The translations under genes and the position numbers were made by a program. 64,000 nucleotides of DNA from Macrostomum lignano (taxonomy: Eukaryota): the NCBI GenBank assembly GCA_002269645.1, contig NIVC01001313.1, positions 1 to 64,000 of the forward strand, read 5' to 3'. Positions 13,591-55,758 of the stretch are shown here, one piece after another. Within the stretch, counting starts at the first letter, position 1. Each line of letters opens with the position of its first letter. Under the pieces are notes generated by a model. It saw nothing but the letters and a program-made list of their open reading frames with translations. It was not told where the DNA came from and searched no databases.

Positions 13591-13732
13591 ATAAGAACGA
13601 TTCCTAATGAAGTTTGGAAGAGGGGTTCTTTTCCAAGGGCGATTTATTTTCGAAACAGATTTGACTAACCAGACTTCTAGGGTGATTCGACCGGCAAAGA
13701 AGACGACTCAAAAATTTGCGATCAATGTTCAT

Positions 13733-17810: not shown

Positions 17811-17855
17811 TCTTCCTCTCCTTCCCCGCCTATCTCCCTCTCTCCATCTCCCTCT

Positions 17856-19779
17856 CTCGATGCCCCACACCGCAGTACTCCCAGCCGCACTCACTGTCTC
17901 TCCGATGCCCCACACCGCAGCACTCTCAGCCGCACTCACTGTCTCTCCGATGCCCCACACCGCAGCACTCTCAGCCGCACTCACTGTCTCTCCGATGCCC
18001 CACACCGCAGTACTCCCAGCCGCACTCACTGTCTCTCCGATGCCCCACACCGCAGTACTCTCAGCCGCACTCACTGTCTCTCCGATGCCCCACACCGCAG
18101 CACTCCCAGCCGCACTCACTGTCTCTCCGATGCCCCACACCGCAGCACTCCCAGCCGCACTCACTGTCTCTCCGATGCCCCACACCGCAGTACTCCCAGC
18201 CGCACTCACTGTCTCTCCGATGCCCCACACCGCAGTACTCCCAGCCGCACTCACTGTCTCTCCGATGCCCCACACCGCAGCACTCCCAGCCGCACTCACT
18301 GTCTCTCCGATGCCCCACACCGCAGTACTCCCAGCCGCACTCACTGTCTCTCCGATGCCCCACACCGCAGTACTCCCAGCCGCACTCACTGTCTCTCCGA
18401 TGCCCCACACCGCAGTACTCCCAGCCGCACTCACTGTCTCTCCGATGCCCCACACCGCAGCACTCCCAGCCGCACTCACTGTCTCTCCGATGCCCCACAC
18501 CGCAGTACTCCCAGCCGCACTCACTGTCTCTCCGATGCCCCACACCGCAGTACTCCCAGCCGCACTCACTGTCTCTCCGATGCCCCACACCGCAGCACTC
18601 CCAGCCGCACTCACTGTCTCTCCGATGCCCCACACCGCAGCACTCCCAGCCGCACTCACTGTCTCTCCGATGCCCCACACCGCAGTACTCCCAGCCGCAC
18701 TCACTGTCTCTCCGATGCCCCACACCGCAGTACTCCCAGCCGCACTCACTGTCTCTCCGATGCCCCACACCGCAGTACTCCCAGCCGCACTCACTGTCTC
18801 TCCGATGCCCCACACCGCAGTACTCCCAGCCGCACTCACTGTCTCTCCGATGCCCCACACCGCAGTACTCCCAGCCGCACTCACTGTCTCTCCGATGCCC
18901 CACACCGCAGCACTCCCAGCCGCACTCACTGTCTCTCCGATGCCCCACACCGCAGCACTCCCAGCCGCACTCACTGTCTCTCCGATGCCCCACACCGCAG
19001 TACTCCCAGCCGCACTCACTGTCTCTCCGATGCCCCACACCGCAGTACTCCCAGCCGCACTCACTGTCTCTCCGATGCCCCACACCGCAGTACTCCCAGC
19101 CGCACTCACTGTCTCTCCGATGCCCCACACCGCAGTACTCCCAGCCGCACTCACTGTCTCTCCGATGCCCCACACCGCAGTACTCCCAGCCGCACTCACT
19201 GTCTCTCCGATGCCCCACACCGCAGTACTCCCAGCCGCACTCACTGTCTCTCCGATGCCCCACACCGCAGTACTCCCAGCCGCACTCACTGTCTCTCCGA
19301 TGCCCCACACCGCAGTACTCCCAGCCGCACTCACTGTCTCTCCGATGCCCCACACCGCAGCACTCCCAGCCGCACTCACTGTCTCTCCGATGCCCCACAC
19401 CGCAGTACTCCCAGCCGCACTCACTGTCTCTCCGATGCCCCACACCGCAGTACTCCCAGCCGCACTCACTGTCTCTCCGATGCCCCACACCGCAGCACTC
19501 CCAGCCGCACTCACTGTCTCTCCGATGCCCCACACCGCAGCACTCCCAGCCGCACTCACTGTCTCTCCGATGCCCCACACCGCAGTACTCCCAGCCGCAC
19601 TCACTGTCTCTCCGATGCCCCACACCGCAGTACTCCCAGCCGCACTCACTGTCTCTCCGATGCCCCACACCGCAGTACTCCCAGCCGCACTCACTGTCTC
19701 TCCGATGCCCCACACCGCAGTACTCCCAGCCGCACTCACTGTCTCTCCGATGCCCCACACCGCAGTACTCCCAGCCGCC
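17856..19779. repeat. 45-nt minisatellite, about 42 near-identical copies, each with a GTGAGT donor on the minus strand
   Basis: Unit TCCGATGCCCCACACCGCAGTACTCCCAGCCGCACTCACTGTCTC. Confidence 0.97.
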
Positions 19780-27200: not shown

Positions 27201-28459
27201 GGATAATTTAGAAGAGTCTAGGGGCGATTGTCAGAGAGGATTCAGAAGAGTCTAGGGGCGATTGTCAGAGAGGATTCAGAAGAGTCTAGGGGCGATTGTC
27301 AGAGAGGATTCAGAAGAGTCTAGGGGCGATTGTCAGAGAGGATTCAGAAGAGTCTAGGGGATTGTCAGGGAGAATTAAGAAGAGTCTATGAGCGATTGTC
27401 AGGGAGAATTCAGGGCAAATAGAGGTGCAATCGTCAGGGAGAATTCACAAGAGTCTAAGGAATTGTCAGGGAGAATTCAGAAGAGTCTTAAGGAATTGTC
27501 AGGGAGAATTCACAAGAGTCTAAGGAATTGTCAGGGAGAATTCAGAAGAGTCTTAAGGAATTGTCAGGGAGAATTCACAAGAGTCTAAGGAATTGTCAGG
27601 GAGAATTCAGAAGAGTCTTAAGGAATTGTCAGGGAGAATTCACAAGAGTCTAAGGAATTGTCAGGGAGAATTCAGAAGAGTCTTAAGGAATTGTCAGGGA
27701 GAATTCAGAAGAGTTTATGGGCGATTGTCAGTTAGGGTTAAAGAGAAGGCAGCAAACTCTCACCTGATCGTCAGGCCGCCCAGCAGCCAGGGTAGGCAAA
27801 GCAATATCAAACGTTGACCGATAGGTTCGCTCAGTAAAACTGGCGCTGGCCACCATAGCCTTAGACAATGGCAGACGAATTATGGTGGGTCCCGGTCGCA
27901 CTAGAGCTACGCGTACCGGATAGGCCTCTAACAATAAATGATTAACGCCATTGCCCGACCATTTGGGCAGGTGATAGAGATACTGAGGCAGCCAATCTAG
28001 CTCATAATTACTGGGATTCAGCGTGTCAATATCTGGCAGAAATACGCACGCTCTATCCGGATCCTCAGTATAATATGGCGAATCTCGAATCGCTCGCATT
28101 AAATTATCAAATTGTCTACTGCGAAACTGAAACAGCCGGTGCCCGCCGGGTGTATAGTAGCGACGCCTAGGATAGATGTACACCCCGATACGGTGCTCGC
28201 CAACCAGACGACAGGCGTCAATGTCAAAGCAGGCGTGATAAGTGCACTTCATGTTGCGCAGACTGAAGTTAAAACCTGGCACCGGGTGTATCACTAAGCT
28301 GGGAGTGTTCACCTCATCTGAGCCCGTGTCCAAAACCAGCCTAGTTGAGCCAACTGGCGGAGGGGGAACTCTCTGACTCACTAGCCAAGCTAGGTAGGCC
28401 AGCCATAGCAGCGTTACTATGGCAACAGTGCCTAGCATTGTTCTAGTGGATTCCGCCAT
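24298..28459 (-). CDS. EXT2: Exostosin-2 heparan sulfate co-polymerase (GT47 + GT64)
   Basis: Exons 28459-27764, 26991-26428, 25749-25338 and 24785-24298, GT-AG with phases 0,0,1. Type II TM anchor at the N-terminus. Motifs YPDVLSKATFCLV, QILNDRVFPY, QGYTAVVLT, NRFFPYDQIETDAVL..DDD, PDRLVG, GAAFYHK, ADPVLY are EXT2-type. Confidence 0.93.
24920..25320. repeat. Degenerate short-unit repeat (CTCGGACA/TATT) in EXT2 intron 3
   Basis: Recurrent CGGACA motifs, irregular spacing. Confidence 0.7.
25805..26420. repeat. 60-nt minisatellite, about 10 copies, in EXT2 intron 2
   Basis: Line-periodic 60-nt unit (ACAGATTCGATCAACTGAGAACACGGATAG...). Confidence 0.96.
27170..27735. repeat. About 30-nt minisatellite in EXT2 intron 1 (GATTGTCAGGGAGAATTCAGAAGAGTCTA...)
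   Basis: Directly visible. Confidence 0.9.
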
Positions 28460-33830: not shown

Positions 33831-35250
33831 TAGTCCAGATCATGCTAAGTGCACACCTAAACAAAAATCAATAATTATAAATGCACACCAAAAAAATTGA
33901 GTGCATGCCCATTCTTAAAACGCTGCTAGTGTTGCAACAATAAATGACCTTTTTTATGTTGTGACAATAAATGACCTTTTTTATTGCATAATAGACATTT
34001 TTAACAGATATTTGGTTAATGTTTTTCTGCTTTTTTGGTGATACTATTTATAGTGGAAAATTGATACACACAGGTTGTTTAAATGCCTTATTATGAGCTT
34101 AAAAACCCAGAAAGTGGGAAATTTATGCTTAAAAATGAACTTTTTTCACCTTTTTTTTCTACTTCACAATAACTCTTCTGCATGATTCTATTAAGTGCAT
34201 GCTAGGTATATTTTCTTAAGAGTGATTCACGCCAACTATGTATGCCTACTTTTGGCATACAAGGCCAATGCACACCCAAATTTTCGGGCATATACTACAT
34301 GATCTAGAGTGTGGATTCTACATAAATAAATGTTTGCAAAATTAAATAATAATAAAAATAGAATACTATATAGCCTCAATAATCTATATAAATGCTAAAT
34401 CATACATGCGCAACAGTTGGCCGAGTTGGCCGATCTGGCTGACCAATTTGGCAGCCAACCAAGGAAGTCACAAATATGCCCACCTGAAAAAACACCCAAG
34501 TAGTAGTACTAAGTAGCTGACAAGGCATTTTGGGTTAATAAGACAGTTATAGTTACTCTTGCCATTTACCCAAAGTTGCGTTAATTTTGCTTTAGGGTTT
34601 TTTACATGTAAGTCGCATTTTTGGCCAAAAACTACGTCGCATTTTTGTTAAAACTAAGTCGCACAGCTGACTAAATTTTGGAGGTTGCGCATGTATGTGC
34701 TAAATTATTGATTTAAAAGCTTTTACTCATATTACACATTGCTGCTAGATTGCCTGTCACTTAATTGACTATTATCTATACTCTAGATAATGTAGTATAC
34801 ACCAAAAAATTTGGACATGCATTGGCCTTGCATACCAATAGTAGGCATGCACAGTTGGCATGCAGCACTCCTAAGAAAATAATGTGCATGCACACCTAGT
34901 GTACACTTTATAGAATATAAAATAATATGGAAATATTTTAAATAAATAAAAAAGTTCATTTTTAAACATAAATTTTAAGCTTACTAGGTTTTTAAGCTTA
35001 TAATAAGGTAATTGAACAAATCTTTGCATGTATTGATTTTTTACTATAAATAATATAGGCAAAAAGCATAAACATCAACCAAATTATTAGCCAAGAAGGG
35101 TATCTTTATTCAACCTAAAAAAGGTCAATTATTATTGCAATACTGGCATACATTTGAGAGTGTAAATATGCACTTAACTTTTTTGGTATACATTTGTAAC
35201 TATTCCATTTTTGTTTAGGCATGCACTTTTTCCTAGCATGATCTAGACTA
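33831..35250. mobile_element. Non-autonomous foldback element with about 580-bp diverged TIRs and TAG...CTA termini
   Basis: TAGTCCAGATCATGCT at 33831 versus AGCATGATCTAGACTA ending at 35250. Inverted similarity is traceable inward to about 34413/34684 (e.g. GCATACAAGGCCAATGCA versus TGCATTGGCCTTGCATAC). No TSD seen. Confidence 0.8.
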
Positions 35251-35860: not shown

Positions 35861-36435
35861 GGCTATCCTACAGAATTGTTTGTTAAATTCACTCATTATC
35901 AATCACTGTACATACATTTTTTTAGCTATTGATGTGAAACTTGCCAAAAATGAATACTTTCATTATGCCAACATTTTAGAAGTGTTTTGGCATTAAAATT
36001 CCATTTGTGGGCGGTTGTAAGTTAAATTTTATTGCAATTTCTGGGTTTTTCCAGATTTTTTCAAAATTTAATGACTATTAATAATTATGTAATTTTGAAT
36101 TTGTGTGCTGATGTCACTGGCAAAAAATGTATCTATGGTCAAAATTAGTTACAAACTCTGGGGCTTGAAGGAGAGGGACCGGGACGCTGCTAAGCTGAAA
36201 ATACTGTGAATAAAGTGCTTTCCAATTAAAAATGGCTGGTGGACAACCTTCTGCCCCAACATAGATTGTGCCACCTCAAGAGTTTCGCCCAGCCCTTGAA
36301 CTAACAAATATGGACACTTCTAAACACTTCTAAAATGTTGGCATAATTAAAGTATTCATTTTTGGAAAGTTTCATGTCAATAGCTAAAAAAAATATGCGT
36401 ACAGTGAATTTAACGAACGATTCTGCAGGATAGCC
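35861..36435. mobile_element. MITE with about 130-bp TIRs (GGCTATCC...GGATAGCC) and an 8-bp TSD
   Basis: AAAAAGTA at 35853-35860 and 36436-36443; TIR similarity includes AAAAATGAATACTTT.ATTATGCCAACATTTTAGAAGTGTTT. Confidence 0.9.
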
Positions 36436-36701
36436 AAAAAGTATACTATGCTATCTTTTGTATTAAAATAGTATTGTAGGCTTTTGCTATCAGTTTAAAA
36501 ACAGTTATCTATTGTACTCTTTACTATTTATCGCTGATAGTGATAGTATAATAATAGATCAAGTTTGACTGTTTTTGCACTGTTCGCAGTCTGCAATAGG
36601 CCCTATTTTCACAAAAAAATCTAAATTGAAAGTGTGCATATTCTGGTCTTTAAAAATCTGAGTGAGTTGGGTTCGCAGTAATCACTACAGCTCCGAGCCT
36701 C

Positions 36702-39700
36702 CCCGCTGGGAAAAAACTGACTTACTGCGCCAGGTCGAAGAGCCAAGTAACCTGGCGCATTTGTCACCAACTTGGGCCATGGGTTGTTCGTATGTAAAAA
36801 AAACAAAGTTTTAGTGGTATGCTTTTATGAAAGTAATTTATTGTTCTGTAACAGTTATAAGTAAATAAAGATGTTTATTACATTTTACCTTCCAATAGGT
36901 AAAATCAAATAATTATCCAGTTACTGAGATCGGTGAATTTTTTAAAAAACTTAATCGTGCAAGTGATTAACGCGCGCGCGCGATTTGCGATCCGAATGAT
37001 CAATGAATATTTTATAGCTAACTTAAATTAAGCTTTGATTACTTGAAGAGTGTAATTCCATACATAATTTTGTTGTGAAATACGTAATTTGACAATTCAT
37101 GAAAACTGAAAAGCACCATTTTTGTCTATACTGTCTACTTTTATGTATATATAATACATTATTTATTGTTCACATCATTATCTTATTCGCAAAGCTGACC
37201 TAAAGACCCTATGCATATAAAATACATCTTAAGTCTGTTAGCTTTGTCTCAAGATGCAAATATAACATTGCATTTAAGTATAATTGCAAAGCTGATTGTT
37301 CCTTATAACCTCTAGACAGAGTAATTTAATTTCATTACTGGGATAGATCATTGGAGCTGTTTATTCTATGTCATGTGTGTGAACCTAATGTATTTGATAT
37401 GCTTTTAAATTTTGAAAATATAAACCAGAGTAGATTTAAAGTGTAGGCCCCAAATGTTTAGATACTCGAATATAATTCAGTGTTGCAAAAAGATAAAAAG
37501 TAATTTGAACCTAAAAAGTGAAAATGAAATGGAAATGAAAAACTATATCGATGATAATTGTGGTATATATACATATATATGTATTATTAGTACTAATTTA
37601 CTACTAATATTAAATTGGGGCCTATTATTATTAGTATTAGTATTTATATATTTGGATTTACTATTATGTAGTGTTGCTGAGAAGTTGCTATTAGATATGC
37701 AATAATTATGTATTGCATTGCTTATTGTATTGCAAATACTTTAGACACATTAGGACACTTTAATTAAAGCTATACTAGTTTGCCTAATCTTGTTCTTTGC
37801 TATATGTCGATATTTACAACGAAGTGTTGGTATTTATTGATGAATTCAAATTAGCTTTATGAAATTTTTAATACTTTTCTTAATGTATTTTAAATGCTAA
37901 AAGTAATGGCTTAACATGTTTAGAAGTTTAACATGTTTCTGTCTGTCTGATTATATGTTCATTGTCAAGTTGTGCTTCCTCTTTATTTTTTGCAAAAAAT
38001 TTTTTGCTAAATATATAATTTAATATAATAAACAAATTCATCAGATGCAAACATTGTACAACCAATTATTTCCTTTAGATGTATACTATTCATTTGCTAC
38101 AATTTTATATTGAAACACAAGTTTGATTTATTCACTATATTAATGTATGAAATGTCACATACTACCGCCAGATAATGTTTCATGGACGGTCAGTTCCAAC
38201 TGACAAGAGAGTCAGCTACTGGAGACAAACTGCACCAGTGCATGGTGCTTACCGAGGCGCTTCCGACAACTGAGTTGGCAAGCTCCGTGGCCAGCACTAT
38301 AAGCAAGGTGAGAAGCTTCTGTTAAATGATGTTGACATTACAATGCATGTATTCATATATGGATATTATAATTGCATTATATAATTATAATATGCATTGC
38401 TCCTACGTTCATATAATCAGGTTTGCAGAACGAGCAGCAATGCCGGCCAGCCTACAAGACAGGTGCCTCTGCCACAACAGTGCAGGAGGTGCCAAGTGTT
38501 GGACGCGGAGGTGAAGCAGCTACAGACCGAACTCGACGAGTGCCACAGAGAGATGCGCAGGGAGCTCAGCGTGCTCGAAGAAATAAGCAGGCACAATCTC
38601 CTGGGCAAGGTCGATGACATCTGGAACGCTGTCAGATCAGGCTCGTCAGCTCAGGCTACAATATCAGGTGCCATTGACCTGCAACGTAGCCCATTGGACG
38701 GCAACAGAAACGACGCCGTGAACGAGGCTGTATGCACCACCGAGGCCAACACCATTGCTTTAAGCGACCATCTCCCGGTGATCAGAATTCAGTGCAGTCT
38801 ACTGACCGCGGCAACTGCAAAAGTCGTCGGGATGCCGGTTGCTAAGGCGTTAGACGCATTGACGCGATCGCTTTTAGATGCTCTTGTCCCAGTAGAAGAG
38901 CGCCAGACTAAGTCATTGCTTCCTGTTTGTAAAGTTAAGTGTCAAACGATATATTCAACAAAAAAGTTTACGAGCGTACATGCACATTTTTTATTTCACA
39001 CTGCAATTCCTACAACCATCCTTGCCAAAATTATCATCCCACCTTTCCCTAGAAACCAAACAAAGAAATGCATTTCATAAACTTAAAATCAACCTTCAGG
39101 TGGAAACCCCGGCAGGAGTCCGCGCCTCGAGGATGTCATCGCTGACAGGGCATACGACCCTAGAGCTACGGCGATTGCTGCATTCGTTATCAAGCAGCTG
39201 GATGGGGTCACCCTGGCCGACGGATTCAGGGCGGTGAGAAAAGTTCTCCGATACGATCGCAAGGCGAGAAGTCGAACGATACGGCTGCAGGCAGTTTCTG
39301 CTATACCTACATCCTCAGCTTCTGCTGCAGCTGCATCCTCAGCTTCTGCTGCAGCTGCATCGTCAGCTTCTGCTGCAGCTGCATCGTCAGCTTCTGCTGC
39401 AGCTGCATCGTCAGCTTCTGCTGCAGCTGCATCGTCAGCTTCTGCTGCAGCATCCTCGATGGCCCAGGCCAACTACTGCGAGTCGACAAAGCCCAAACAT
39501 CCTCGACTGCTGCATACACAAATGGGCAACATTTCCCCAACGCCAACAAACGACAGCTTCACGACGTGCTTCAGCCAAATCGATGGAGAACTTATCAATA
39601 TGATAGAATTGTGAGACAATTGATTTTTTACTAACAACTTTTTGCCTCTTATCGTTAAGTTATCACGAATTTAGTGCTGTTTGCAGCCACGCACTAATTG

Positions 39701-40696
39701 CTTTTTTGTTTTGTTTTTTTCTGTTTTTTCTTTTGTTCTTCATGTTTGCTTCTTTACATATACATAACTGCTGTTCACATGGTGACCGCGGTCAGTGAAA
39801 GTCTGTGAAAGTAAAAAGCAATAGAAAAAATAGGGAAGCCAGATAAACTGAGAGCACAATCAGGGATTTTTTCTTGCGTTTCACACATTTTGTAAATGTT
39901 GCGTTTACAGCCATTCTCATACATGTAGAGTTATATTGCAATAGTTACGTCAATGTTTATTGAATTTTAAAAATCCTCTTCACAAGTGGCCACTGTTTCT
40001 AGAGCCACCCTCCACAAGGTTTTCAGCTGATTAAGCAAAGCGCGTATCCATTGTGAAAGTATACTAGCTGTAGATCCAGAAAATTTTTTCACATTGTCTT
40101 GAAAGTACAAGTTCGCATGTATCTCCTCTTTGCAATCAATGTATGCTCGTGTATACTTTTTGAAAAGGTTTTAAGATGTGCGTAATTTACATGCGCACCA
40201 CAAAAATATAAAACGATTTCTTTTGCCGTTACATAACAAAAAATTACGCAAAATTATGAAAATGCTACTGCTATTTTATTAACAGTGATCTTGCATTGCA
40301 TTGTTTGTCTTTTTAGACGGAAGGAGACGTTAATTATCTCTAATTTATAGCGCCTGCCTATGTACATGATGCAAATTATAAACTGAGCGCGTAATCAAGT
40401 CGTGTTTGTGTACACATACAAGGGAAAATCATTTAGTTTGGAAAAAAATCTATGCAACTAAATTTATAGTAGTACAAATTTCATACTTGCTACTGACGTT
40501 CAGTAGTTTGAATAGTATGCTGAACTGCTTTCTGTGCGCGTGCAAAATTCTGGGTCACTTTATGCCACGTCGGCGCCGCGTTGCCAAGTTGGTGCCGAGT
40601 TCTTAACGGCTTCCGATTGGTTGGTCGTCGTGGCGCTAACCTGGCGCAGACTGAGCCGCTCAACCCGGCGCATCCACCAACATTTTTCCCAGCGGG
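36702..40696 (+). mobile_element. 3995-bp TIR element (left palindrome arm), possibly CACTA/EnSpm-like and non-autonomous
   Basis: 14-bp TIR CCCGCTGGGAAAAA...TTTTTCCCAGCGGG. Subterminal TGCGCC(A/G)GGT motifs and ACCAACTTGG occur near both ends. Internal spliced gene, no transposase. Confidence 0.85.
38182..39614 (+). CDS. Three-exon, 382-aa CxxC + coiled-coil + BEN-like domain protein with an Ala/Ser repeat
   Basis: Exons 38182-38307 (AAG|GTGAGA), 38421-38928 (CAG|...|GTAAAG) and 39100-39614 (CAG|); total 1149 nt, in frame. CRRCQVLDAEVKQLQTEL; LTRSLLDALVPVEERQTKSLL..GNPGR...YDPRATAIAAFVIKQL...FRAVRKVLRYDRK follows the BEN helical pattern (my alignment by eye). Confidence 0.72.
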
Positions 40697-40708
40697 AGCG
40701 GAAGCGGA

Positions 40709-43700
40709 CCCGCTGGGAAAAATGTTGGTGGATGCGCCGGGTTGAGCGGCTCAGTCTGCGCCAGGTTAGCGCCACGACGACCAACCAATCGGAAGCCGTT
40801 AAGAACTCGGCACCAACTTGGCAACGCGGCGCCGACGTGGCATAAAGTGACCCAGAATTTTGCACGCGCACAGAAAGCAGTTCAGCATACTATTCAAACT
40901 ACTGAACGTCAGTAGCAAGTATGAAATTTGTACTACTATAAATTTAGTTGCATAGATTTTTTTCCAAACTAAATGATTTTCCCTTGTATGTGTACACAAA
41001 CACGACTTGATTACGCGCTCAGTTTATAATTTGCATCATGTACATAGGCAGGCGCTATAAATTAGAGATAATTAACGTCTCCTTCCGTCTAAAAAGACAA
41101 ACAATGCAATGCAAGATCACTGTTAATAAAATAGCAGTAGCATTTTCATAATTTTGCGTAATTTTTTGTTATGTAACGGCAAAAGAAATCGTTTTATATT
41201 TTTGTGGTGCGCATGTAAATTACGCACATCTTAAAACCTTTTCAAAAAGTATACACGAGCATACATTGATTGCAAAGAGGAGATACATGCGAACTTGTAC
41301 TTTCAAGACAATGTGAAAAAATTTTCTGGATCTACAGCTAGTATACTTTCACAATGGATACGCGCTTTGCTTAATCAGCTGAAAACCTTGTGGAGGGTGG
41401 CTCTAGAAACAGTGGCCACTTGTGAAGAGGATTTTTAAAATTCAATAAACATTGACGTAACTATTGCAATATAACTCTACATGTATGAGAATGGCTGTAA
41501 ACGCAACATTTACAAAATGTGTGAAACGCAAGAAAAAATCCCTGATTGTGCTCTCAGTTTATCTGGCTTCCCTATTTTTTCTATTGCTTTTTACTTTCAC
41601 AGACTTTCACTGACCGCGGTCACCATGTGAACAGCAGTTATGTATATGTAAAGAAGCAAACATGAAGAACAAAAGAAAAAACAGAAAAAAACAAAACAAA
41701 AAAGCAATTAGTGCGTGGCTGCAAACAGCACTAAATTCGTGATAACTTAACGATAAGAGGCAAAAAGTTGTTAGTAAAAAATCAATTGTCTCACAATTCT
41801 ATCATATTGATAAGTTCTCCATCGATTTGGCTGAAGCACGTCGTGAAGCTGTCGTTTGTTGGCGTTGGGGAAATGTTGCCCATTTGTGTATGCAGCAGTC
41901 GAGGATGTTTGGGCTTTGTCGACTCGCAGTAGTTGGCCTGGGCCATCGAGGATGCTGCAGCAGAAGCTGACGATGCAGCTGCAGCAGAAGCTGACGATGC
42001 AGCTGCAGCAGAAGCTGACGATGCAGCTGCAGCAGAAGCTGACGATGCAGCTGCAGCAGAAGCTGAGGATGCAGCTGCAGCAGAAGCTGAGGATGTAGGT
42101 ATAGCAGAAACTGCCTGCAGCCGTATCGTTCGACTTCTCGCCTTGCGATCGTATCGGAGAACTTTTCTCACCGCCCTGAATCCGTCGGCCAGGGTGACCC
42201 CATCCAGCTGCTTGATAACGAATGCAGCAATCGCCGTAGCTCTAGGGTCGTATGCCCTGTCAGCGATGACATCCTCGAGGCGCGGACTCCTGCCGGGGTT
42301 TCCACCTGAAGGTTGATTTTAAGTTTATGAAATGCATTTCTTTGTTTGGTTTCTAGGGAAAGGTGGGATGATAATTTTGGCAAGGATGGTTGTAGGAATT
42401 GCAGTGTGAAATAAAAAATGTGCATGTACGCTCGTAAACTTTTTTGTTGAATATATCGTTTGACACTTAACTTTACAAACAGGAAGCAATGACTTAGTCT
42501 GGCGCTCTTCTACTGGGACAAGAGCATCTAAAAGCGATCGCGTCAATGCGTCTAACGCCTTAGCAACCGGCATCCCGACGACTTTTGCAGTTGCCGCGGT
42601 CAGTAGACTGCACTGAATTCTGATCGCCGGGAGATGGTCGCTTAAAGCAATGGTGTTGGCCTCGGTGGTGCATACAGCCTCGTTCACGGCGTCGTTTCTG
42701 TTGCCGTCCAATGGGCTACGTTGCAGGTCAATGGCACCTGATATTGTAGCCTGAGCTGACGAGCCTGATCTGACAGCGTTCCAGATGTCATCGACCTTGC
42801 CCAGGAGATTGTGCCTGCTTATTTCTTCGAGCACGCTGAGCTCCCTGCGCATCTCTCTGTGGCACTCGTCGAGTTCGGTCTGTAGCTGCTTCACCTCCGC
42901 GTCCAACACTTGGCACCTCCTGCACTGTTGTGGCAGAGGCACCTGTCTTGTAGGCTGGCCGGCATTGCTGCTCGTTCTGCAAACCTGATTATATGAACGT
43001 AGGAGCAATGCATATTATAATTATATAATGCAATTATAATATCCATATATGAATACATGCATTGTAATGTCAACATCATTTAACAGAAGCTTCTCACCTT
43101 GCTTATAGTGCTGGCCACGGAGCTTGCCAACTCAGTTGTCGGAAGCGCCTCGGTAAGCACCATGCACTGGTGCAGTTTGTCTCCAGTAGCTGACTCTCTT
43201 GTCAGTTGGAACTGACCGTCCATGAAACATTATCTGGCGGTAGTATGTGACATTTCATACATTAATATAGTGAATAAATCAAACTTGTGTTTCAATATAA
43301 AATTGTAGCAAATGAATAGTATACATCTAAAGGAAATAATTGGTTGTACAATGTTTGCATCTGATGAATTTGTTTATTATATTAAATTATATATTTAGCA
43401 AAAAATTTTTTGCAAAAAATAAAGAGGAAGCACAACTTGACAATGAACATATAATCAGACAGACAGAAACATGTTAAACTTCTAAACATGTTAAGCCATT
43501 ACTTTTAGCATTTAAAATACATTAAGAAAAGTATTAAAAATTTCATAAAGCTAATTTGAATTCATCAATAAATACCAACACTTCGTTGTAAATATCGACA
43601 TATAGCAAAGAACAAGATTAGGCAAACTAGTATAGCTTTAATTAAAGTGTCCTAATGTGTCTAAAGTATTTGCAATACAATAAGCAATGCAATACATAAT

Positions 43701-44703
43701 TATTGCATATCTAATAGCAACTTCTCAGCAACACTACATAATAGTAAATCCAAATATATAAATACTAATACTAATAATAATAGGCCCCAATTTAATATTA
43801 GTAGTAAATTAGTACTAATAATACATATATATGTATATATACCACAATTATCATCGATATAGTTTTTCATTTCCATTTCATTTTCACTTTTTAGGTTCAA
43901 ATTACTTTTTATCTTTTTGCAACACTGAATTATATTCGAGTATCTAAACATTTGGGGCCTACACTTTAAATCTACTCTGGTTTATATTTTCAAAATTTAA
44001 AAGCATATCAAATACATTAGGTTCACACACATGACATAGAATAAACAGCTCCAATGATCTATCCCAGTAATGAAATTAAATTACTCTGTCTAGAGGTTAT
44101 AAGGAACAATCAGCTTTGCAATTATACTTAAATGCAATGTTATATTTGCATCTTGAGACAAAGCTAACAGACTTAAGATGTATTTTATATGCATAGGGTC
44201 TTTAGGTCAGCTTTGCGAATAAGATAATGATGTGAACAATAAATAATGTATTATATATACATAAAAGTAGACAGTATAGACAAAAATGGTGCTTTTCAGT
44301 TTTCATGAATTGTCAAATTACGTATTTCACAACAAAATTATGTATGGAATTACACTCTTCAAGTAATCAAAGCTTAATTTAAGTTAGCTATAAAATATTC
44401 ATTGATCATTCGGATCGCAAATCGCGCGCGCGCGTTAATCACTTGCACGATTAAGTTTTTTAAAAAATTCACCGATCTCAGTAACTGGATAATTATTTGA
44501 TTTTACCTATTGGAAGGTAAAATGTAATAAACATCTTTATTTACTTATAACTGTTACAGAACAATAAATTACTTTCATAAAAGCATACCACTAAAACTTT
44601 GTTTTTTTTACATACGAACAACCCATGGCCCAAGTTGGTGACAAATGCGCCAGGTTACTTGGCTCTTCGACCTGGCGCAGTAAGTCAGTTTTTTCCCAGC
44701 GGG
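40709..44703 (-). mobile_element. Second, inverted copy of the 3995-bp TIR element (right palindrome arm)
   Basis: Mirror coordinates sum to 81405 at the ends, the centre and all paired ORFs. Confidence 0.9.
41791..43223 (-). CDS. Mirror copy of the BEN-like gene (exons 43223-43098, 42984-42477, 42305-41791)
   Basis: Same as the left copy except at least one substitution (DHLPV versus DHLPA; 38779 T versus 42626 G). Confidence 0.72.
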
Positions 44704-45336
44704 CGCTGGTCGATCGATGCAGTCAAAATACGCTTTATAAGAAATAAATATTTTTGAAATCGCGCGCTAAAGCATGCAGTTATCGAGAAACTTTCGGCAC
44801 AAGACGTACTTCTATCAAATTTATCTATTCCGCCACTTATATTTAGTGAGATGACTCCTCATTAGAAGTAAAATCTATACATACTTCTAAGAAAAGCATG
44901 ACCGAGCCATGCATGGTAGCATGACAGTATATATTGCTTCTGTCAACCAACAAGTTGAGAATTTCAATTTGGCAACAGTAGATTTGGTCTTGCCCATAAG
45001 ACATGCCTGCAGTAGACGCAGCGCCTTGCCCACAGATAGAAAATGCCAGACCAAGTTGATAAGCTAGCCAAGCTGAGAATTGGCCGCAGTCGTGCGGCTT
45101 AACGCAGAAGGCCTGTCGCAACCTCGCTCGCAGATCGCCCAGCGTCTGCATGATTGCTGCAGGTGTCGACGTGGCAGCTATATTCAGCATCTACCTGAGT
45201 CAACCGTGATTTTGTCATCTGTCATTTTTTCATCTACATGTAGGGGTTTTCTTTTCAGACCTCGACTTTGGTCACTCGTCATCTTAATCTGTAGCATACT
45301 TGAAGATTGTTTGTAGCTATACTAGATACATAGTGT

Positions 45337-45640
45337 GGGTTTAGTGTCGCGGACTCACGACTGATGTTCGGGGGCTCAATTTTCGACTCACTTGGAAAAA
45401 TTTGTGTTGATGAGCAAGACACTGAAATCTGCATTGCTTCAGTTCACCCAGCTATAAAATAGGTACTTACATGCAATATTTGTGTAGCATGCAGCTGGGG
45501 GCTTAGGGGTGTGGGGCGACTTGGCCTGCAGTCTTGGACTGAACAGCCGTACACAGCCTTCAGATGCGCCGCGCAACAGCTGCGGCTGAGCTGTCGGTTT
45601 GCACCAATACATCTGCCTATTAGGGCCTATTAGTGATCAT
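45337..45640 (+). mobile_element. Second, more decayed copy of the tRNA-derived SINE
   Basis: GGACTCACGACTG...GCAAGACACTGAAATCTGCATTGCTTCAGTTCACCCAGCTATAAAATAGGT...CTTCAGATGCGCCGCGCAACAGCTGCGGCTGAGCTGTCGGTT matches the reverse complement of 16520-16770. Confidence 0.8.
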
Positions 45641-47157: not shown

Positions 47158-50100
47158 CTAGCAATCTTCGCCCCCCCCGATGGGGGACATCTGGATAGAA
47201 CTTCTGTTCTCTACAAGTAAAAAAACCGCAAAATAGAGTCTTCATAAAGACAACAGAAAAACTGCTCAAATGAAGCGCAATGCAAAAAGAAAACATCCCA
47301 AGACAGCAAGCATCCCCCCTCCTCCCAGATAGCAAGCACCCCCAGATAGCAAGCACCCCCAGATAGCAAGCACCCCCAGATAGCAAGCACTCCCAGATAG
47401 CAAGCACCCCCAGATAGAAAGAACCCCCAGATAGCAAGCATCCCTCAGATAGCAAGCACCCCAGATAGAAAGAACCCCCAGATAGCAAGTATCTATCCTT
47501 TAATAGCAAGCATCCACCAGACAAAAAGTATATAGTGCAACATTTCCTTTTAGCTTTCTAGGGGCTTCTTTATGATTGGCATGACGCTTCTTATTACGTT
47601 TGAAAATTTCTCTCCTGTGTTTGAAATGGTGGCTATTTTATGTTTGAATTGGTGGCTTTTTAATGTTTGGCATGGTGACTCTTTAATGTTCTACATGGTG
47701 GCTCTTTAATGTTTGACATCGTGCCAGTTTTATGTTTGTCATGGTGGCTCCTTAATGTTAGAAACGGTGGCTCTTTAATGTTTGACATGGAGTCACATAT
47801 ATGTTTCACATGGTGGCTCTTCTATGTCTAACTTGGGCGCTTTTTTATGTTTGACATCGTGGCTCGTTAATGTTCGACATAGTGGCTCTTTACTGTTCGA
47901 CATGGTGGCTCTTTAATGTTTGACATGGTGGCTCTTTAACGTTCGACATGGTGGCGCTTTAATGTTCGACATTGTGGCTCTTTACTGTTTGACATGGTGG
48001 CTCTTTAATGTTCAACATGCTGGCTCGTTATTGTTTGACATGGTGGCTTTTTAATGTTTGACATGGTGTCTCTTTAATGCTCGACATTGTGGCTCTTTAA
48101 TGTTCTACATTGTGGCTCTTTAATTTTCTACATTGTTGCTCTTTAATGTTTGACATTGTGGCTCTTTAATGCTTGACATGGTGGCTCTTTAATGTTCAAC
48201 ATGGTGGCTCTTTATTGTTTGACATGATGGCTCTTTAATGTTCGACATGGTGGCTCTTGAATGTTTGACATGGTGGCTCTTTTATGTTCGACATGGTGGC
48301 TCTTTAATGTTCGCCACGTTTGTCATCAGGTTTTTCATGTTTGAGTCACGTATATGTTTGACATGGTGGCTCTTTAATGTTTGGCATGGTGGCTCTTTAA
48401 TGTTTGACATGGTGGCCTTTTAATGTTCGACATGGAGTCATGTATATGTTTGACATGGAGTCATGTATATGTTTGACATAGTGGCTCTTTGATGTTTGAC
48501 ATTGTGCTCTTTAATTTTCGACATTCCGGCTCATTAATGTTTTACATTGTGATTATTTAATGTTTGACATAGTGGCTCTTTAAAGTTCGACATGGTGGCT
48601 CTTTAATGTTCGACATGGTGGCTCTTGAATGTCTGACATGGAGTCATGTATATGTTTGACAAAGTGGCTCTTTAAAGTTCGACATGGTGGCTTTTTAATG
48701 TTTGACATGGTGGCTCTTTTATGATTTACATGGTGGCTCTTTTATGTTTGAAATGGTGGCTCTTTTATGATTGACATGGTGGCTCTTTAATGTTTGACAT
48801 AGTGGCGCTTTAATGTTTGACATGGAGTCAGTCACGTGTATGTTTGACATGGTGGCTCTTTTATGCTTGACATGTAGGCTCTTTACTGTTCGACATGGTG
48901 GCTCTTTTATGTTTGGCATGGTGGCTCTTTATTGTTCGACAAGGTGGCTCTTTAATGTTTTACATGGTGGCTCTTTAATGTTTGACATAGTGGCTCTTTT
49001 ATGATCGACATGGTGGCTCTTTTATGTTTGGCATGGTGGCTCTTTAATGTTCGACATGGTGGCTCTTTAATGTTCGACATGGTGGCTCTTTTATGTTTGG
49101 CATGGTGGATCTTTCATGTTTGAGATGATAGCTCTTTTATGTTTGAAATGATAGCGCTTATATGTTTGACATGGTAGGTCTTTATTGTTTGACATGGTAG
49201 CTCTTTTATGTTTGACTCGGTGGCTCTTTAATGTTCGACATGGTGGCTATTTTATGTTTGGCATGGTGGCTCTTTTATGTTCGACATGGTGGCTCTTTTA
49301 TGTTTGGCATGGTGGCTCTTTAATGTTTGACATGGTGTCTCTTGAATGTTTGATATGTTGACTCTTGAATGTTTGACATGGTGGCTCTTGAATGTTTGAC
49401 ATGATGCCTTTTTTATGTTTGACATGGTAGCTCTTTTATGTTTGACTTGGTGGCTCTTTACTGTTTGACATGATGCCTCTTGAATGTTTGACATGGTAGG
49501 TCTTTAATGTTTGACATGGTAGCTCTTTAATGTTTGACTTGGTGGCTCTTTAATGTTCGATATGGTGGTTCTTTAATGTTTGATATGGTGGCTCTTTAAT
49601 GTTCGAAATGGTGGCTCTTTAATGTTCGAAATGGTGGTTCTTTAATGTTTGACATAAAAACACCTATATGTTTGACATAAAGTCACTGATATGTTTGACA
49701 TAAAGTCACTTTTACGTTTGACATAGTGGCTCTCTAATGTTTGACATAGTGGCTCTTTAATATTCTACATGGTGGCTCTTTAATGTTTGACATAGTGGCT
49801 CTTTAATGTTCGACATGGTGGCTCTTTAATGTTTGACATGGTGGCTCTTTAATGTTCGACATGGTGGCTGGTTAATGTTTGATATGGTGGCTCTTCTTTT
49901 GCGCTTCTTTTATGTTTTGCAGTTTAGTGTTTTCAAGGTGTTTTAATAAAAAAATTATTTTGCACTAATAAGATTCGAACCCAGGTCGCTACGTTGGCAG
50001 TCCAGTCTGTTCGTATCTAAGCTATCTCTTCTCAATTGGAGTACATGAATTGTGGCCCTTATAATTCAATTCTTACAGCAAGTCAATTAAAGTAAAAAGT

Positions 50101-50496
50101 TATGACATAATCAATTTCCCAGTCAGCCAGTATCAGTCTCAGTTCAAGTTAGCAATATTGGTTACGCAATTTAAATCAAGTCGTGTGTGCATTTCTTCGA
50201 CACTGTTTTCAACTTGTTGTGATGCAATCCTTATCAGAATTGAAATTCAGTCAGTCAGGTTTTTCTCTAGCATTCTTACAATGCATTTCAAGTCGAAAAT
50301 TTTGCTTGACCTTTGCAAAAAAGCATGTTTTTCGAATATTTAATCCCTTTAACATTGAGCAATTTCTTAGCCAGGATGCATGTACCGTCCCAGGAAAATT
50401 TCTGATCAAATGGTGAAAGTTTGAAGAAAATCGGTTGAGCCATTTTTTCTGAAATCTATCGCATACCGACAGACAACTCATTTTTAGTATATAGGA
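47158..50496 (-). mobile_element. Non-autonomous Helitron family A, copy 1 (Lep1-like architecture)
   Basis: Minus strand: 5'-TCCTATATACTAAAAA with GTCT microsatellite; 3' C-run/ATC/G-run hairpin, then CGAAGATTG-CTAG|T. Internal 23-nt (GACATGGTGGCTCTTTAATGTTT) and 18-nt (AGCAAGCATCCCCCAGAT) minisatellites. Confidence 0.82.
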
Positions 50497-52175
50497 CTAG
50501 CAATCTTCGCCCCCCGATGGGGGGCGCAAAAATGACGCCAAGTGGTTTTTATTTTGGCCAATGAGTAATCACCTTACTTATTATTCAAAATCCATTAATC
50601 AAAACTTACTTTTTCTCATTTTTGGCAAAAATAAATTGCCATGAATCAAAACCTTCACCAGCCAAAGTTTCCTTCATCAGCCCAAAACCCTTTCTCATTC
50701 AGCAAATAGTACTTATCCTTTCAAGCACAAACTCTTAGGGCATATCGTCATTGGCCTGGGCATATTCTGGTCCGCAGCAGGAGCTCAATATGCCATAAGC
50801 CTTGATAACATCTCAATAATTTCCCCAGTAAGCCTTGACATCTCAGCAATTCCTCTCAGTAAGCCTTGACATCTCAGCAATTCCCCCCAGTAAGCCTTGA
50901 AATCTCAGTAACTCCCCAGTAAGTCTCGAATCTCAGTTATTCTTCCAGTAAGTCTTGAAGTCTAAGCAATTTCCCCAGTAAGCCTTGACATCTCAGCAAT
51001 TCATCCAAGAAAGCCTTGAAATCTCAGCAATTCCCCCAGTAAGCCTTGAAGTCTCAGTAATTCCCCAGTAAGTCTCGAATCTCAGTAATTCCTCCAGTAA
51101 GTCTTGACTTCTCACAATTCCCCCAGTAGGCCTTGACAACTCAGCAATTCCCCCAGTAAGCCTTCACATCTCAGCAATTCCCCCAGTAAGCCTTGACAAC
51201 TCAGCAATTCCCACAGTAAACCTTGAAATCTCAGAAATTCCCCAGTAAGCCTTGAAGTCTCAGCAATTCCCCAGTAGGCCTTGACAACTCACCAATTCCC
51301 CCAGTAGGCCTTGACAACTCAGCAATTCATCCAATAAAGCCTTGAAATCTCAGCAATTTCCTGAGTAAGCCTTGAAATCTCAGAAATTCCCCCAGTAAGC
51401 CTTGAAGTCTCAGAAATTTCCCCAGTAAGCCTCGACATCGCAGCAATTACCCCATTAAGCCTTGACATCTCAGAAATCCCCCAGTAAGCCTTGACATTGC
51501 AGCAATTAAACTCGAGCCTTGGCATCTACGCAATTCTCCCAGTCCAGTAAGCCTCGAGATTGCAGCAATTCCCCCAGTAAGCCTTGACAACTCAGCAATT
51601 CATCCAAGAAAGCCTTGAAATCTCAGCAATTTCCTGAGTAAGCCTTGAAATCTCAGAAATTCCCCCAGTAAGCCTTGACAACTCAGCAATTCCCCCAGTA
51701 AACCTTGAAATCTCAGAAATTCCCCCAGTAAGCCTTGAAGTCTCAGTAATTCCCCCAGTAAACCTTGAAATCTCAGAAATTCCCCCAGTAAGCCTTGAAG
51801 TCTCAGCAATTCTCCCAGTAGGCCTTGACAACTCAGCAATTCCCCCAGTAAACCTTGAAATCTCAGAAATTCCCCCAGTAAGCCTTGAAGTCTCAGCAAT
51901 TCTCCCAGTAAGCCTTGACAACTCAGCAATTCCCCCAGTAAACCTTGAAATCTCAGAAATTCCCCTAGTAAGCCTTGACAACTCAGCAATTCCTCCCAGT
52001 TAGCCTTTGGCTGGTGAAGGTTTTGATTCATGGCAATTTATTTTTGCCAAAAATGAGAAAAAGTAAGTTTTGATTAATGGATTTTGAATAATAAGTAAGG
52101 TTATTACTCATTGGCCAAAATAAAAACCACTTGGCGTCATTCTTGCGTCCCCCAACGGGGGGCTTAAATTGCTAG
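50497..52175. mobile_element. Element with about 170-bp inverted termini, both being Helitron 3' ends, around an about 30-nt minisatellite
   Basis: CTAGCAATCTTCGCCCCCCGATGGGGG at 50497 and CCCCCAACGGGGGGCTTAAATTGCTAG ending at 52175. Inverted match runs over about 50497-50667 versus about 52006-52175. Internal CCCCAGTAAGCCTTGA.ATCTCAGCAATT array at about 50810-51990. Confidence 0.8.
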
Positions 52176-52592
52176 TAGTTGCTTTTAATCAAAAAATGTT
52201 CGATTAGTCCAGGCACAAGCTAAAAATAAATGAAAATTAATTTAATATATTTTTATCTCCCACGTGCATACTCTGAAGCTTGCGAATAATTTAATTATTT
52301 ATAGCTCGTAGCATCAGCTCAAGAAGTTAAAGTTTAGTCTATGGCCATAGACGTATTATTATTTTTCGAGCTCTCACTGCGAGAAAAATACACTAATTAG
52401 ATAGGGAAAATACAGTTTTTTGAATATTTAAGACCTTTAGAATTGAAGCAGATAAAAGAAATGTTAACCATACAATCCTTGGTTGAGTTGCAACTTTTTG
52501 GTGAAAACGCAATCAAAATTGGTCAAGAATTGCAGTCTGTAGAGCGTTTTACACGGACAGACAGACATAGATTAGAGATTTAGTATATAAGA
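52176..52592 (-). mobile_element. Helitron 5' fragment (related family)
   Basis: Minus strand begins TCTTATATACTAAA followed by (GTCT)n. Confidence 0.6.
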
Positions 52593-55500
52593 CGATGGGG
52601 GACATCTGGATAGAATCTCTGTTTTCTACAAGTAACAAAAAGACAGCCAAAAATCCTTCAAAAAGACAACAGACAAACTGCTCAAATGAAGTGCATTGCA
52701 AAAAGAAATCATCCCAAGACTGCAAGCATCCCCCAGATAGCAAGCATCCCCTAGATAGCAAGCATCCCCTAGATAGCAAGCATCCCCCAGATAGCAAGCA
52801 TCCCCTAGATAGCAAGCATCCCCCAGATAGCAAGCATCCCCCAGATAGCAAGCATCCCCCAGATTGCAAGCATCCCCCAGATAGCAAGCATCCCCAAGAT
52901 AGCAAGCATCCCTCAGATAGCAAGCATCCCCCAGATAGCAAGCATCCCCCAGATAGCAAGCATCCCCCAGATAGCAAGCATCCCCCAGATAGCAAGCATC
53001 CCCCAGATAGCAAGCATCCCCCAGATAGCAAGCATCCCCCAGATAGCAAGCATCGTCCAGATAGCAAGCATCCCCCAGATAGCAAGCATCCCCCAGATAG
53101 CAAGCATCCCCCAGATAGCAAGCATCCCCCAGATAGCAAGCATCCCCCAGATAGCAAGCATCCCCCAGATAGCAAGCATCCCCCAGATAGCAAGCATCCC
53201 CAAGATAGCAAGCATCCCCAAGATAGCAAGCATCCCCCAGATAGCAAGCATCCCCCAGATAGCAAGCATCCCCCAGATAGCAAGCATCCCCCAGATAGCA
53301 AGCATCCCCAGATAGCAAGCATCCCCCAGATAGCAAGCATCCCCCAGATAGCAAGCATCCCCCAGATAGCAAGCATCCCCCAGATAGCAAGCATCCCCCA
53401 GATAGCAAGCATCCCCAAGATAGATAGCATCCCCAAATAGCAAGCATCCACCAGACAATAAGTAGCTAGTGCGACAATTTCCTTAGCATTATAGCGGCTC
53501 CTTTAAAATTCGCTTATTTTTACGTTTGAAATTGTGTATCTTTTATGTTTAACAGGGTGGCTCTTTTATGTTCTACGCTCGTACATGTTAACTCTTTTAT
53601 GTTTGATACGGTGGCTTTTCAATGTCTGACATAGTGGCTCTTCTATGTTTGACATGGGGGCTCTTCTATGTTTGACATGGGGGCTCTTCTATGTTTGACA
53701 TGGGGCTCTTCTATGTTTGACAAAGTGGCTTTTTAATGTTTAACATGGTGGCTCTTTAATGTTCGAAATGGTGGCTCTTTAATGTTCAAAAAGGTGGCTC
53801 TTTTATGTTTGACATGGTGGCTCTTTAATGTTTGACATGGTGGCTCTTTAATGTTAGACAAAGTAGCTCTTTAATGTTTGACATGATGGCTCTTTAATGA
53901 TAGACATGGTGGCTCTTTAATTTTTGACATGGTGGCTCTTTAATGTTGGACATGGTGGCTCTTTAATGTTAGACATGGTGGCTCTTTAATGTTCGACATA
54001 AAGTCACTTATATGTTTGACATGATGGCTCTTTTATGTTTAACATGGTGGCTCTTTAATGTTTGACATGGTAGCTCTTTTATGTTCGACATGGTGGCTCT
54101 TTAATGTTCGACATGGTGGCTCTTTTATGTTCGACATGGTGTCGCTTTAATGTTTGACATGGAGTTACGTATATGTTTTACATGGTGGCTCTTAAATGTT
54201 TGACATGGTGGCTCTTCAATGTTTGACATGGTGTCTCTTTAACGTTTGACATGGAGTCATGTATATGTTTGACATGGTGGCTCTTTAATGTTAGACATGG
54301 TGGCTCTTTTATGTTTTGCATGGTGGCTCTTTAATGTTAGACATGGTGGCTCTTTTATGTTTTGCATGGTGGCTCTTTTATGTTCGACATGGTGTCTCTT
54401 CAATGCTTGACATGGAGTCACGTATATGTTTGACATGGAGTCATGTATATGTTTGACCTGGTGGCTCTTTAATGTTTTATATGGTGGCACTTTCATGTTT
54501 GACCTGGTGGCTCTTTAATGTTTGACATGGTGGCTTTTTAATATTTGACATGGTGGCACTTTCATGTTTGACCTGGTGGGTCTTTAATGTTTGACATGGT
54601 ACCTCTTTTATGTTCGACATGGTGGCTCTTTAATGTTTTACATGGTGGCTCTTTAATGTTTGACATGGTGACTCTTTTATGTTCTACATGGTGGCTCTTT
54701 TATGTTCGACATGGTGGCTCTTTAATGTTCTTAATGGTGTCTGTTTTATGTTTGACATGGCGGCTCTTTAATGTTTGACATGGTGGCTTTTTAATGTTTG
54801 ACATGGTGGCTTTTTAATGTTCGACATGGTGGCTCTTTTAGGTTTGAAATGGTGGCTCTTAAATGTTTGACATTGTGGCTCTTTAATGTTCGACATGGTG
54901 GCTCTTTAATGTTTGACATGGTAACTCTTTTATGTTTGATATGGTGGCTCTTTTATGTTCGACATGGTGGCTCTTTAATGTTCGACATGGTGGCTCTTTT
55001 AGGTTTGAAATGGTGGCTCTTTAATGTTTGACATTGTGGCTCTTTAATGTTTGAAATGGTGGCTCTTTAATGTTTGACATTGTGGCTCTTTAATGTTTGA
55101 AATGGTGGCTCTTTAATGTTTAGAATTTTGTGTTTTTAAGGTGTTTTAATAAAAAAAACATTTTTCACTACTAAGATTCGAACCAAGGTCGCTACATTAG
55201 CATTCCAGTTTGTTTGCATCCGGCTATCTCTTTTCAATCGGAGAACTTGAATTGTGGCCCTTATAATAAATTCTTATAGCAAGTCGGTTAGAGTAAAAAG
55301 TTATGACATAATCAATTTCTCAGTCAGCCAGTATCAGTCTAAATTCAAGTTAGCAATATGGTTACGCAATTTCAATGAAGTCTTGTGTGCGTTTCTGTGG
55401 CACTGTTTTCAACTTGTTGTGATGCAATCTTTATCACAATCGTAATTCAGCCAGTCAGTTTTTTCTCTAGCATTCTTACAATGCATTTCAGGTCGAAAGA

Positions 55501-55704
55501 GCTGCTTGACCTTTGCAAAAAAGCATGTTTTTCGAATATTTAATCCCTTTAACATTGAGCAATTTCTTAGCCAAGATGCATGTACCGTCCCAGGAAAATT
55601 TCTGATCGAATGGTGCAAGTTTGAAGAAAATCGGTTGAGCCATTTTTTCTGAAATCTATCGCATAGCTAGTTAGTTACAGACATTTCATTTTTAGTATAT
55701 AGGA
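52593..55704 (-). mobile_element. Helitron family A, copy 2 (terminal CTAG missing)
   Basis: Colinear with 47158-50496; A|TC 5' junction at 55705/55704; 18-mer expanded to about 40 copies. Confidence 0.82.
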
Positions 55705-55758
55705 TGACGATATTAACAGTAACCAACTCCACGAGTAAATGATGTGACATCTTCCTTA

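Follow-up and report, generated by a model that had tools for sequence, protein, structure and literature searches.

An 8-kb inverted repeat at positions 36702-44703 of a 64,000-nucleotide (nt) stretch of the Macrostomum lignano genome (GenBank assembly GCA_002269645.1, contig NIVC01001313.1, positions 1 to 64,000 of the forward strand; hereafter the window) was analysed, and it was found to be composed of two copies of one and the same internally deleted DNA transposon, which stand tail to tail with 12 nt between them. The element belongs most probably to the CACTA/Mirage/Chapaev (CMC) superfamily, as a divergent member with atypical CCC...GGG termini. As regards the origin of the pair, we give a probability of about one half to the reading that it is a genuine inverted dimer, in which a break made by the transposase was repaired by end joining and took up a second copy that had been set free. 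The pair is made up of the following parts:

36702..40696, + strand: left arm, a complete 3995-nt non-autonomous, internally deleted transposon copy, running head to tail
36702..36738, + strand: head terminal inverted repeat (TIR) of the left arm, 14 nt exact and about 37 nt at 73%, with its mirror at 44667-44703
38779, + strand: the sole difference between the arms, T in the left arm, C in the right arm (42626, complement) and in the full-length copy L002 (see below)
40660..40696, - strand: tail TIR of the left arm, with its mirror at 40709-40745
40697..40708, no strand: spacer AGCGGAAGCGGA, 12 nt, non-palindromic
40709..44703, - strand: right arm, the identical element inverted, the two tails facing each other

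A repeat finder singled out a dominant inverted repeat with two 3995-nt arms (36702-40696 and 40709-44703) separated by 12 nt, and in a base-by-base comparison the arms differed by exactly one mismatch and by no insertion or deletion. The 14-mer CCCGCTGGGAAAAA has exactly four occurrences in the window and these are the four arm ends; with up to two mismatches allowed, 0.52 chance matches were expected, and none of 100 shuffled sequences reached four. Additionally, the subterminal motif TGCGCCAGGT lies in the head TIR of the left arm and occurs again as an inverted repeat at 36750, and the motif TGCGCC(A/G)GGT recurs subterminally at both the head and the tail end. The mirror symmetry stops at both outer arm ends, where the left flank reads ...GAGCCTC and the right flank CGCTGGTCG... 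(CGCTGGTCGATCG...). The spacer AGCGGAAGCGGA consists of two AGCGGA units, each identical in 5 of 6 positions to the element-terminal AGCGGG, so that 10 of its 12 nt agree with two copies of the terminal hexamer. The 200 nt spanning the centre fold into a single hairpin (-143 kcal/mol, z = -31), which only restates the symmetry of the arms. A first-pass annotation of this DNA had reported a palindrome at the same coordinates, without net insertion or deletion, with TIRs at all four ends and with at least one substitution between the arms (38779/42626); both of our comparisons agree with it, and they fix the number of substitutions at one.

In order to identify the element, copies from other contigs of the same assembly were compared, namely L002 (NIVC01000421.1) and L001 (NIVC01004140.1), which were reached through the members of the A0A1I8G6W9 protein cluster. 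In L002 the similarity to the arms spans 4418-12596, both limits falling precisely on the termini CCCGCTGGG and CCCAGCGGG, and this copy is 8.2 kb long. The copy in L001 (4652-22514) is broken up by other insertions and has the same terminal nucleotides as the arms; in all copies the termini are 5'-CCCGCTGGG...CCCAGCGGG-3'. Because two independent copies start and stop at identical nucleotides, the arm ends are the true ends of the element. The arms follow L002 in order over 4418-5941 and then over 10115-12596, with about 99.1-99.4% identity, while the approximately 4.2 kb between these segments (L002 5942-10114) are missing from both arms; with the L001 copy, too, they are collinear. The deletion has left one junction in each arm:

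38213..38223, + strand: internal-deletion junction CAGCTACTGGA (junction string CAGCTACTGGAGACAAAC), with its mirror at 43182-43192

It removes the transposase open reading frame (ORF) after codon 16 and also the original first exon of the element's second gene. Judged from these alignments, each arm is a complete non-autonomous internal-deletion derivative of a M. lignano DNA transposon.

One of the insertions in the L001 copy is itself a transposon of 8687 bp (13462-22148), with the ends TACCCTAGGG... and ...CCCTAGGGTA. This nested element is only distantly related to the one in the window and carries a gene for an 805-aa DUF1258 (Mirage-type) protein, which is 25% identical over 137 aa to the 1093-aa transposase described below, and its 2-bp TA target-site duplication is proven, the empty site being intact at window position 40319 and at L002 12219.

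With regard to the relationship of the arms, 20 substitutions and three small insertions or deletions relative to L002 (about 0.5% divergence) are common to both, and the arms also agree in their deletion junction and in the unit number of a 24-nt minisatellite. At the single differing site, 38779/42626, the right arm keeps the L002 base and the left arm is derived. Since the deletion junction and the substitutions are shared and one site only differs, the arms appear as recent sister copies, which were duplicated long after the family had diversified.

The transposase was found in the segment that the arms have lost. L002 contains an ORF of 1093 aa at 5893-9174, and L001 carries the same ORF with 99.4% identity over residues 215-1093; the window retains only its first 16 codons. 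The family may still be active, as suggested by these two near-identical copies that carry the transposase ORF. Over 579 aa the L002 ORF shares 26% identity (E 2e-33) with the database protein P0007, which matches the Pfam families Transposase_21 (CACTA Tnp2 family) and DUF1258 just below the curated cut-offs; a second relative, P0008, matches DUF4218, likewise just below its curated cut-off. The L002 ORF itself gave no match to Transposase_21, DUF1258 or DUF4218 (Pfam, E<=0.1), and a comparison with solved structures, intended to reach RAG1, returned no relative. In an alignment of the L002 ORF, P0007, P0008 and the DUF1258 protein of L001, D517, D603 and E887 are invariant and form a DDE triad, and the columns C622-D-N-C625 and H862-QVFH-H867 are invariant as well, the inner H866 giving H(3)H. 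A DDE triad with C(2)C and H(3-4)H motifs is the hallmark of the CACTA/Mirage/Chapaev(/Transib) clade, named CMCT when Transib is included, in which the target-site duplications are 2-5 bp long and the termini are mostly CA...TG (PMC12730594). Because the catalytic residues and both motifs follow this pattern, the element is most probably a CMC member; its CCC...GGG termini depart from the CA...TG rule of the clade. The duplication length of the element is only weakly determined from three loci, the flanks being GT/GT at the L002 copy, AT/AC at the L001 copy and TC/(6 nt)TC in the window. Approximately residues 70-290 of the transposase ORF are about 28 tandem EPEREHGL octapeptides encoded by a 24-nt repeat. 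No paper was found that links Macrostomum to En/Spm-type elements.

The element's second gene is still present in each arm, and its left and right copies point towards each other:

38182..39614, + strand: second gene, left copy, with exons 38182-38307, 38421-38928 and 39100-39614, GT-AG introns and a product of 382 aa
41791..43223, - strand: second gene, right copy, with the mirror exons 43098-43223, 42477-42984 and 41791-42305

The deletion has fused this gene to the 5' region of the transposase gene, where a second ATG (38182) is in frame with it. The product is 95% identical to the M. lignano UniRef entry A0A1I8G6W9. It contains a 24-nt coding minisatellite (SASAAAAS; 39292-39451), the unit number of which varies among the database copies. 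The T at 38779 is a C-to-T transition at a CpG and replaces Ala by Val, and all database proteins have Ala. Besides its own entry only P0009 was matched among 1.84 billion representative proteins, over residues 303-360; neither a significant Pfam domain nor a relative among solved structures (PDB) was detected. The UniRef label "BEN domain-containing" could not be reproduced, as no BEN match was obtained with Pfam at E<=1 or at E<=0.1. A single-sequence AlphaFold model was unusable (predicted local distance difference test score, pLDDT, 43). The En/Spm elements have a two-gene plan, with TnpD and TnpA, and by position the gene retained here might be the counterpart of the second En/Spm protein, which is said as an analogy and not as a finding.

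The first-pass annotation had placed all boundaries of the palindrome on transposon ends, and the loss of similarity at identical nucleotides in the other M. lignano contigs bears this out; its convergent genes in tail-to-tail arms are likewise found in the mirrored gene models. The description as a TIR element was right as far as a TIR-bounded transposon is concerned, and missed that this is a transposase-less deletion derivative of the CMC superfamily.

Since the formation of the pair has to be read from its junctions, these were inspected base by base. On the + strand the adjacent dinucleotides are TC/AG at the left arm, GA/CG at the right arm and TC/CG around the pair; thus there is no adjacent duplication. 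Two short sequences follow the right arm:

44704..44709, no strand: CGCTGG, next to the outer end of the right arm, reading as the neighbouring terminal CCAGCG inverted; a candidate filler
44710..44717, no strand: TCGATCGA, a perfect 8-nt palindrome whose first two bases are TC

The TC that opens TCGATCGA matches 36700-36701, the two bases to the left of the left arm, and it is a candidate 2-bp target-site duplication, a size which is supported by the GT/GT of the L002 copy and by the TA of the nested element. The earlier statement that no target-site duplication exists (flanks TC and CG) is correct for the adjacent bases; it overlooked the possible 2-bp TC, which becomes visible when 6 filler bases are allowed. 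TCGATCGA may represent palindromic (P-type) nucleotides from an opened flank hairpin, or it may be due to chance. A search for a template of the spacer in the vicinity gave as longest match the 8-mer CGGAAGCG, inside each arm (38258, 43140), which is uninformative. The AGCGGA units of the spacer stand immediately behind the terminal AGCGGG, and they have the look of filler for which that end was the template.

End joining is favoured because there is no adjacent duplication and the fillers resemble the element terminus, and from these junctions we infer the following order of events. A single derivative copy would have resided at this locus with a 2-bp TC duplication. Transposase from full-length copies elsewhere would have cut this resident copy at its tail, and a second, identical copy would have been cut free, most simply from the sister chromatid or from the homologue. 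End joining would then have sealed the break with the free copy turned round, adding 12 nt of filler where the two tails meet and 6 nt (possibly 10) where the head meets the flank. The empty site predicted by this course of events is ...GAGCCTCGATGCAG... or ...GAGCCTCGATCGATGCAG..., with CGCTGG, and perhaps TCGA, as filler. The aberrant transposition or end-joining origin proposed in the first-pass annotation is thereby supported in kind, by the absent adjacent duplication and by terminus-like fillers at two junctions.

Several points weigh against the capture of a freed copy by end joining. The evidence that the joint structure exists physically is the assembly. Without the empty site, neither the TC duplication nor the reading of CGCTGG as filler can be counted as proven; in about half of all cases chance would put a TC among the first 10 flank bases, and the flanks of the L001 copy (AT/AC) show no clean 2-bp duplication. 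The identity of the arms could also have been kept up by arm-to-arm gene conversion, and the age of the pair might then be greater. Nor is there an established cleavage chemistry for CMC transposases. Furthermore, an 8-kb palindrome with a 12-nt spacer is expected to be unstable. Short spacers have been reported to stabilise palindromes, and breaks at the centre that abolish the symmetry do likewise (PMC8701086); the present centre could have been remodelled from an originally tighter one.

Among the other explanations, we regard an artefact as unlikely, with a single copy at the locus and the second arm added by chimeric reads or by a mis-join. Missed-adapter reads are known to yield perfect long palindromes. 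Moreover, the assemblies of this repeat-rich, neopolyploid genome are PacBio-based, and 36% of the length is reported to be chimeric between subgenomes (PMC10733133). The structure itself speaks against this explanation: a fold-back chimera breaks at random and mirrors its flank, whereas here the flanks are unrelated and unique and all four boundaries fall on element termini. The centre is a novel 12-mer which matches no known adapter and is no nearby copy, and an assembler would not invent it. Furthermore, the arms differ by a substitution, so the consensus kept them apart, and this substitution is a transition, not the insertion or deletion error typical of long reads. An adapter origin of the spacer was considered and rejected: the spacer is not known to match any PacBio or Oxford Nanopore adapter, and the Illumina stem AGATCGGAAGAGC agreed by hand in 9 of 12 positions, which is chance level. 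The annotators' view that the spacer is no adapter therefore stands, the better agreement being with two terminal hexamers of the element. Their view that the palindrome is not a read artefact can be kept in part, in that the structure is unlike a fold-back or missed-adapter chimera; mis-assembly is still to be reckoned with. Neither flank had a paralogue in the window or in the compared contigs. The locus was not found in a second assembly by exact look-ups of nine window ORFs and of the L002 transposase ORF, and look-ups of P0001, P0005 and P0006 led to no contig with the locus.

Two independent insertions in opposite orientation 12 bp apart, for example through a local hop, with the spacer and the right flank as target DNA, seem to us quite improbable. 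Cut-and-paste elements often reinsert nearby, inverted double insertions of the P element are known from singed-weak, and in a genome so rich in short tandem repeats AGCGGAAGCGGA could be native sequence. Such a history predicts an empty site with ...GAGCCTC followed by AGCGGAAGCGGACGCTGGTCG..., which would contain AGCGGAAGCGGACGCTGG. Neither arm has a direct duplication, whereas the L002 copy and the related nested element show one of 2 bp; in addition, the arrival of a rare derivative twice within 12 bp and the terminus-like spacer and flank would have to be coincidence.

An equally small chance is given to a dimer that was preformed elsewhere, by tail-tail ligation of two excised copies or by replication of a copy whose tail was closed by a hairpin, and moved here as an 8-kb composite by means of its head ends. 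Its outer ends are indeed identical heads with intact 14-nt termini and subterminal motifs, so that the pair is formally a composite transposon, and full-length transposase genes are present in the genome. There is, on the other side, no duplication directly around the pair (TC versus CG), and if CGCTGG were part of the mobile unit, the right end would be an invalid terminus. Least probable is a replication error, in which the nascent strand turns back at the tail, recopies the element and switches back at the head: template switching does give inverted duplications with short templated fillers, as seen here, and the TIRs provide microhomology, but both switch points lie exactly on terminal nucleotides, as transposase cleavage predicts and random stalling does not, and the flank mirroring that normally accompanies a fold-back from a break is not present.

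The surroundings of the pair are eukaryotic in character, with patchy G+C content and exon-like ORFs for an amidase, a FUN14 protein, a major facilitator superfamily (MFS) transporter and an exostosin; when the window was scanned for tRNAs and for Rfam families, no match was obtained. About one third of the window consists of minisatellite arrays with units of 17-65 bp, located within 184-27731 and 47283-63746, for instance at 17852-19778 (45 bp x 43, 98% matches), at 11684-13615 (22 bp x 88) and, with 23-bp units, at 47618-49895 and 53592-55121. Many of them lie between the exon-like ORFs, and several long ORFs, which occur in all frames, are mere translations of arrays. To the left of the palindrome there are two older elements resembling foldback elements or miniature inverted-repeat transposable elements (34032-35065 and 35861-36435), with arms 79-94% complementary and centres of 334-425 nt; the palindrome thus sits in an AT-rich, repeat-rich stretch (28-31% G+C). 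On the right, a 1.7-kb element (50496-52176) has 172-nt TIRs, 96% complementary, around a 30-bp minisatellite (50808-52007). A repeat of about 280 nt in the right flank of the palindrome (45350-45626) occurs again 29 kb upstream (16512-16763) in opposite orientation and with 76% identity.

The exostosin (GT47)-like ORF is a first exon of 243 aa (27728-28459, - strand). No homologue of it was obtained at E<=1e-20 in a set of 5.8 billion proteins, and M. lignano transposon proteins were present in the set that was searched. The gene may be unannotated publicly, or the window may derive from another assembly or line.

Provided that the structure is genuine, an animal cut-and-paste transposon has been caught in making an inverted copy of itself. 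In the 1082 nt from the stop codon of the second gene to the element tail there is neither AATAAA nor ATTAAA, and for this reason transcripts of the convergent second genes may run past the centre and form a hairpin, or transcripts of opposite sense may anneal to one another. Through complementary or hairpin RNA of this kind the family could come under silencing by small RNAs; in M. lignano a Piwi-interacting RNA (piRNA) pathway is active, with uni- and bidirectional clusters of a median length of about 9.7 kb, and small-RNA data have been published (PMC4604429). As DNA, the pair would be a cruciform-prone fragile site; the cruciform and the hairpin RNA put forward in the first-pass annotation are outcomes that the sequence permits, and the inner tails, 12 bp apart, might serve as reversed-ends substrates of the type that breaks chromosomes in maize. 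A reading that goes further, and that we hold to be rather unlikely, is that the locus is a natural 'killer' of an active animal CMC family, acting on the full-length copies through piRNAs or small interfering RNAs (siRNAs) seeded by kilobase-long double-stranded RNA from read-through of the convergent genes, and that its junctions, the filled tail-tail joint and the head-flank joint with TCGATCGA behind it, record a RAG/Transib-like cleavage with free ends and hairpinned flanks. A real palindrome would also offer a defined, near-perfect 8-kb structure in a tractable regenerating animal, useful for the study of palindrome stability. As a by-product, a two-gene CMC-type family was defined which existing protein models do not recognise.

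Among the closest known counterparts is Mu killer of maize, which carries a partly deleted MuDR element duplicated in inverted orientation and for which a hairpin RNA of about 4 kb was proposed to silence the family (PMC3440606). Both are inverted duplications of a defective copy of a DNA transposon, active in maize and perhaps also in M. lignano, with roughly 4 kb per arm, and the 3995-nt inverted arms of M. lignano cover the whole second gene and the former 5' region of the transposase gene. Mu killer, unlike the present pair, belongs to the Mutator superfamily in a plant, is a partial duplication, owes its transcription to a neighbouring gene, and is a demonstrated silencer; the M. lignano arms are complete, and their transcription would come from their own convergent genes. 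In the Ac/Ds system, composite insertions arise by alternative (sister-chromatid or reversed-ends) transposition, and their double-stranded RNA and siRNAs silence Ac (bioRxiv 10.1101/2020.01.07.897926). There too, aberrant transposition that uses the ends of two copies yields inverted transposon duplications; these are of the hAT type and consist of fractured pieces with flanking DNA, formed with re-replication, whereas two whole elements without flanking DNA are seen here. In maize it is such events that first expose an active element to RNA silencing.

Two defective cut-and-paste copies inverted at one site are also known from flies. The singed-weak allele of Drosophila contains double P elements in inverted orientation and is an unstable locus. 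Its P elements differ in size, have an 8-bp target duplication between them and came by two ordinary integrations, while the M. lignano copies are near-identical and have no duplication between them. As a comparison of mechanism only, the pair resembles the signal and hybrid joints of V(D)J recombination, where RAG, a relative of Transib/CMC transposases, cleaves ends which are then end-joined to each other or to a flank and may gain extra nucleotides in the process; topologically, the tail-tail joint corresponds to a signal joint formed by two elements, although in a normal signal joint both ends come from a single excised segment. With the palindromes of sex chromosomes the pair shares multi-kb, near-identical arms; those, in contrast, have kilobase spacers, contain host genes, are ancient and gene-converted, and here a transposon pair has a spacer of 12 nt.

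Within its own superfamily, the element resembles the CMC elements, including dSpm, in the DDE triad with C(2)C and H(3-4)H, in the two genes, the subterminal motifs, the probably short duplications and the internal-deletion derivatives, and differs from them in its CCC...GGG rather than CA...TG/CACTA termini, in a transposase without a Pfam model and in a second protein without a detectable relative. Comparable inverted transposon duplications, which the first-pass annotation does not mention, were already described in Mu killer and Ac/Ds; inverted transposon pairs and their consequences are established, and the current understanding of them is unchanged by this case. It should be emphasized that, set beside the known systems, what is new is the flatworm host, the CMC superfamily, the completeness of both arms and a family unseen by curated protein models.

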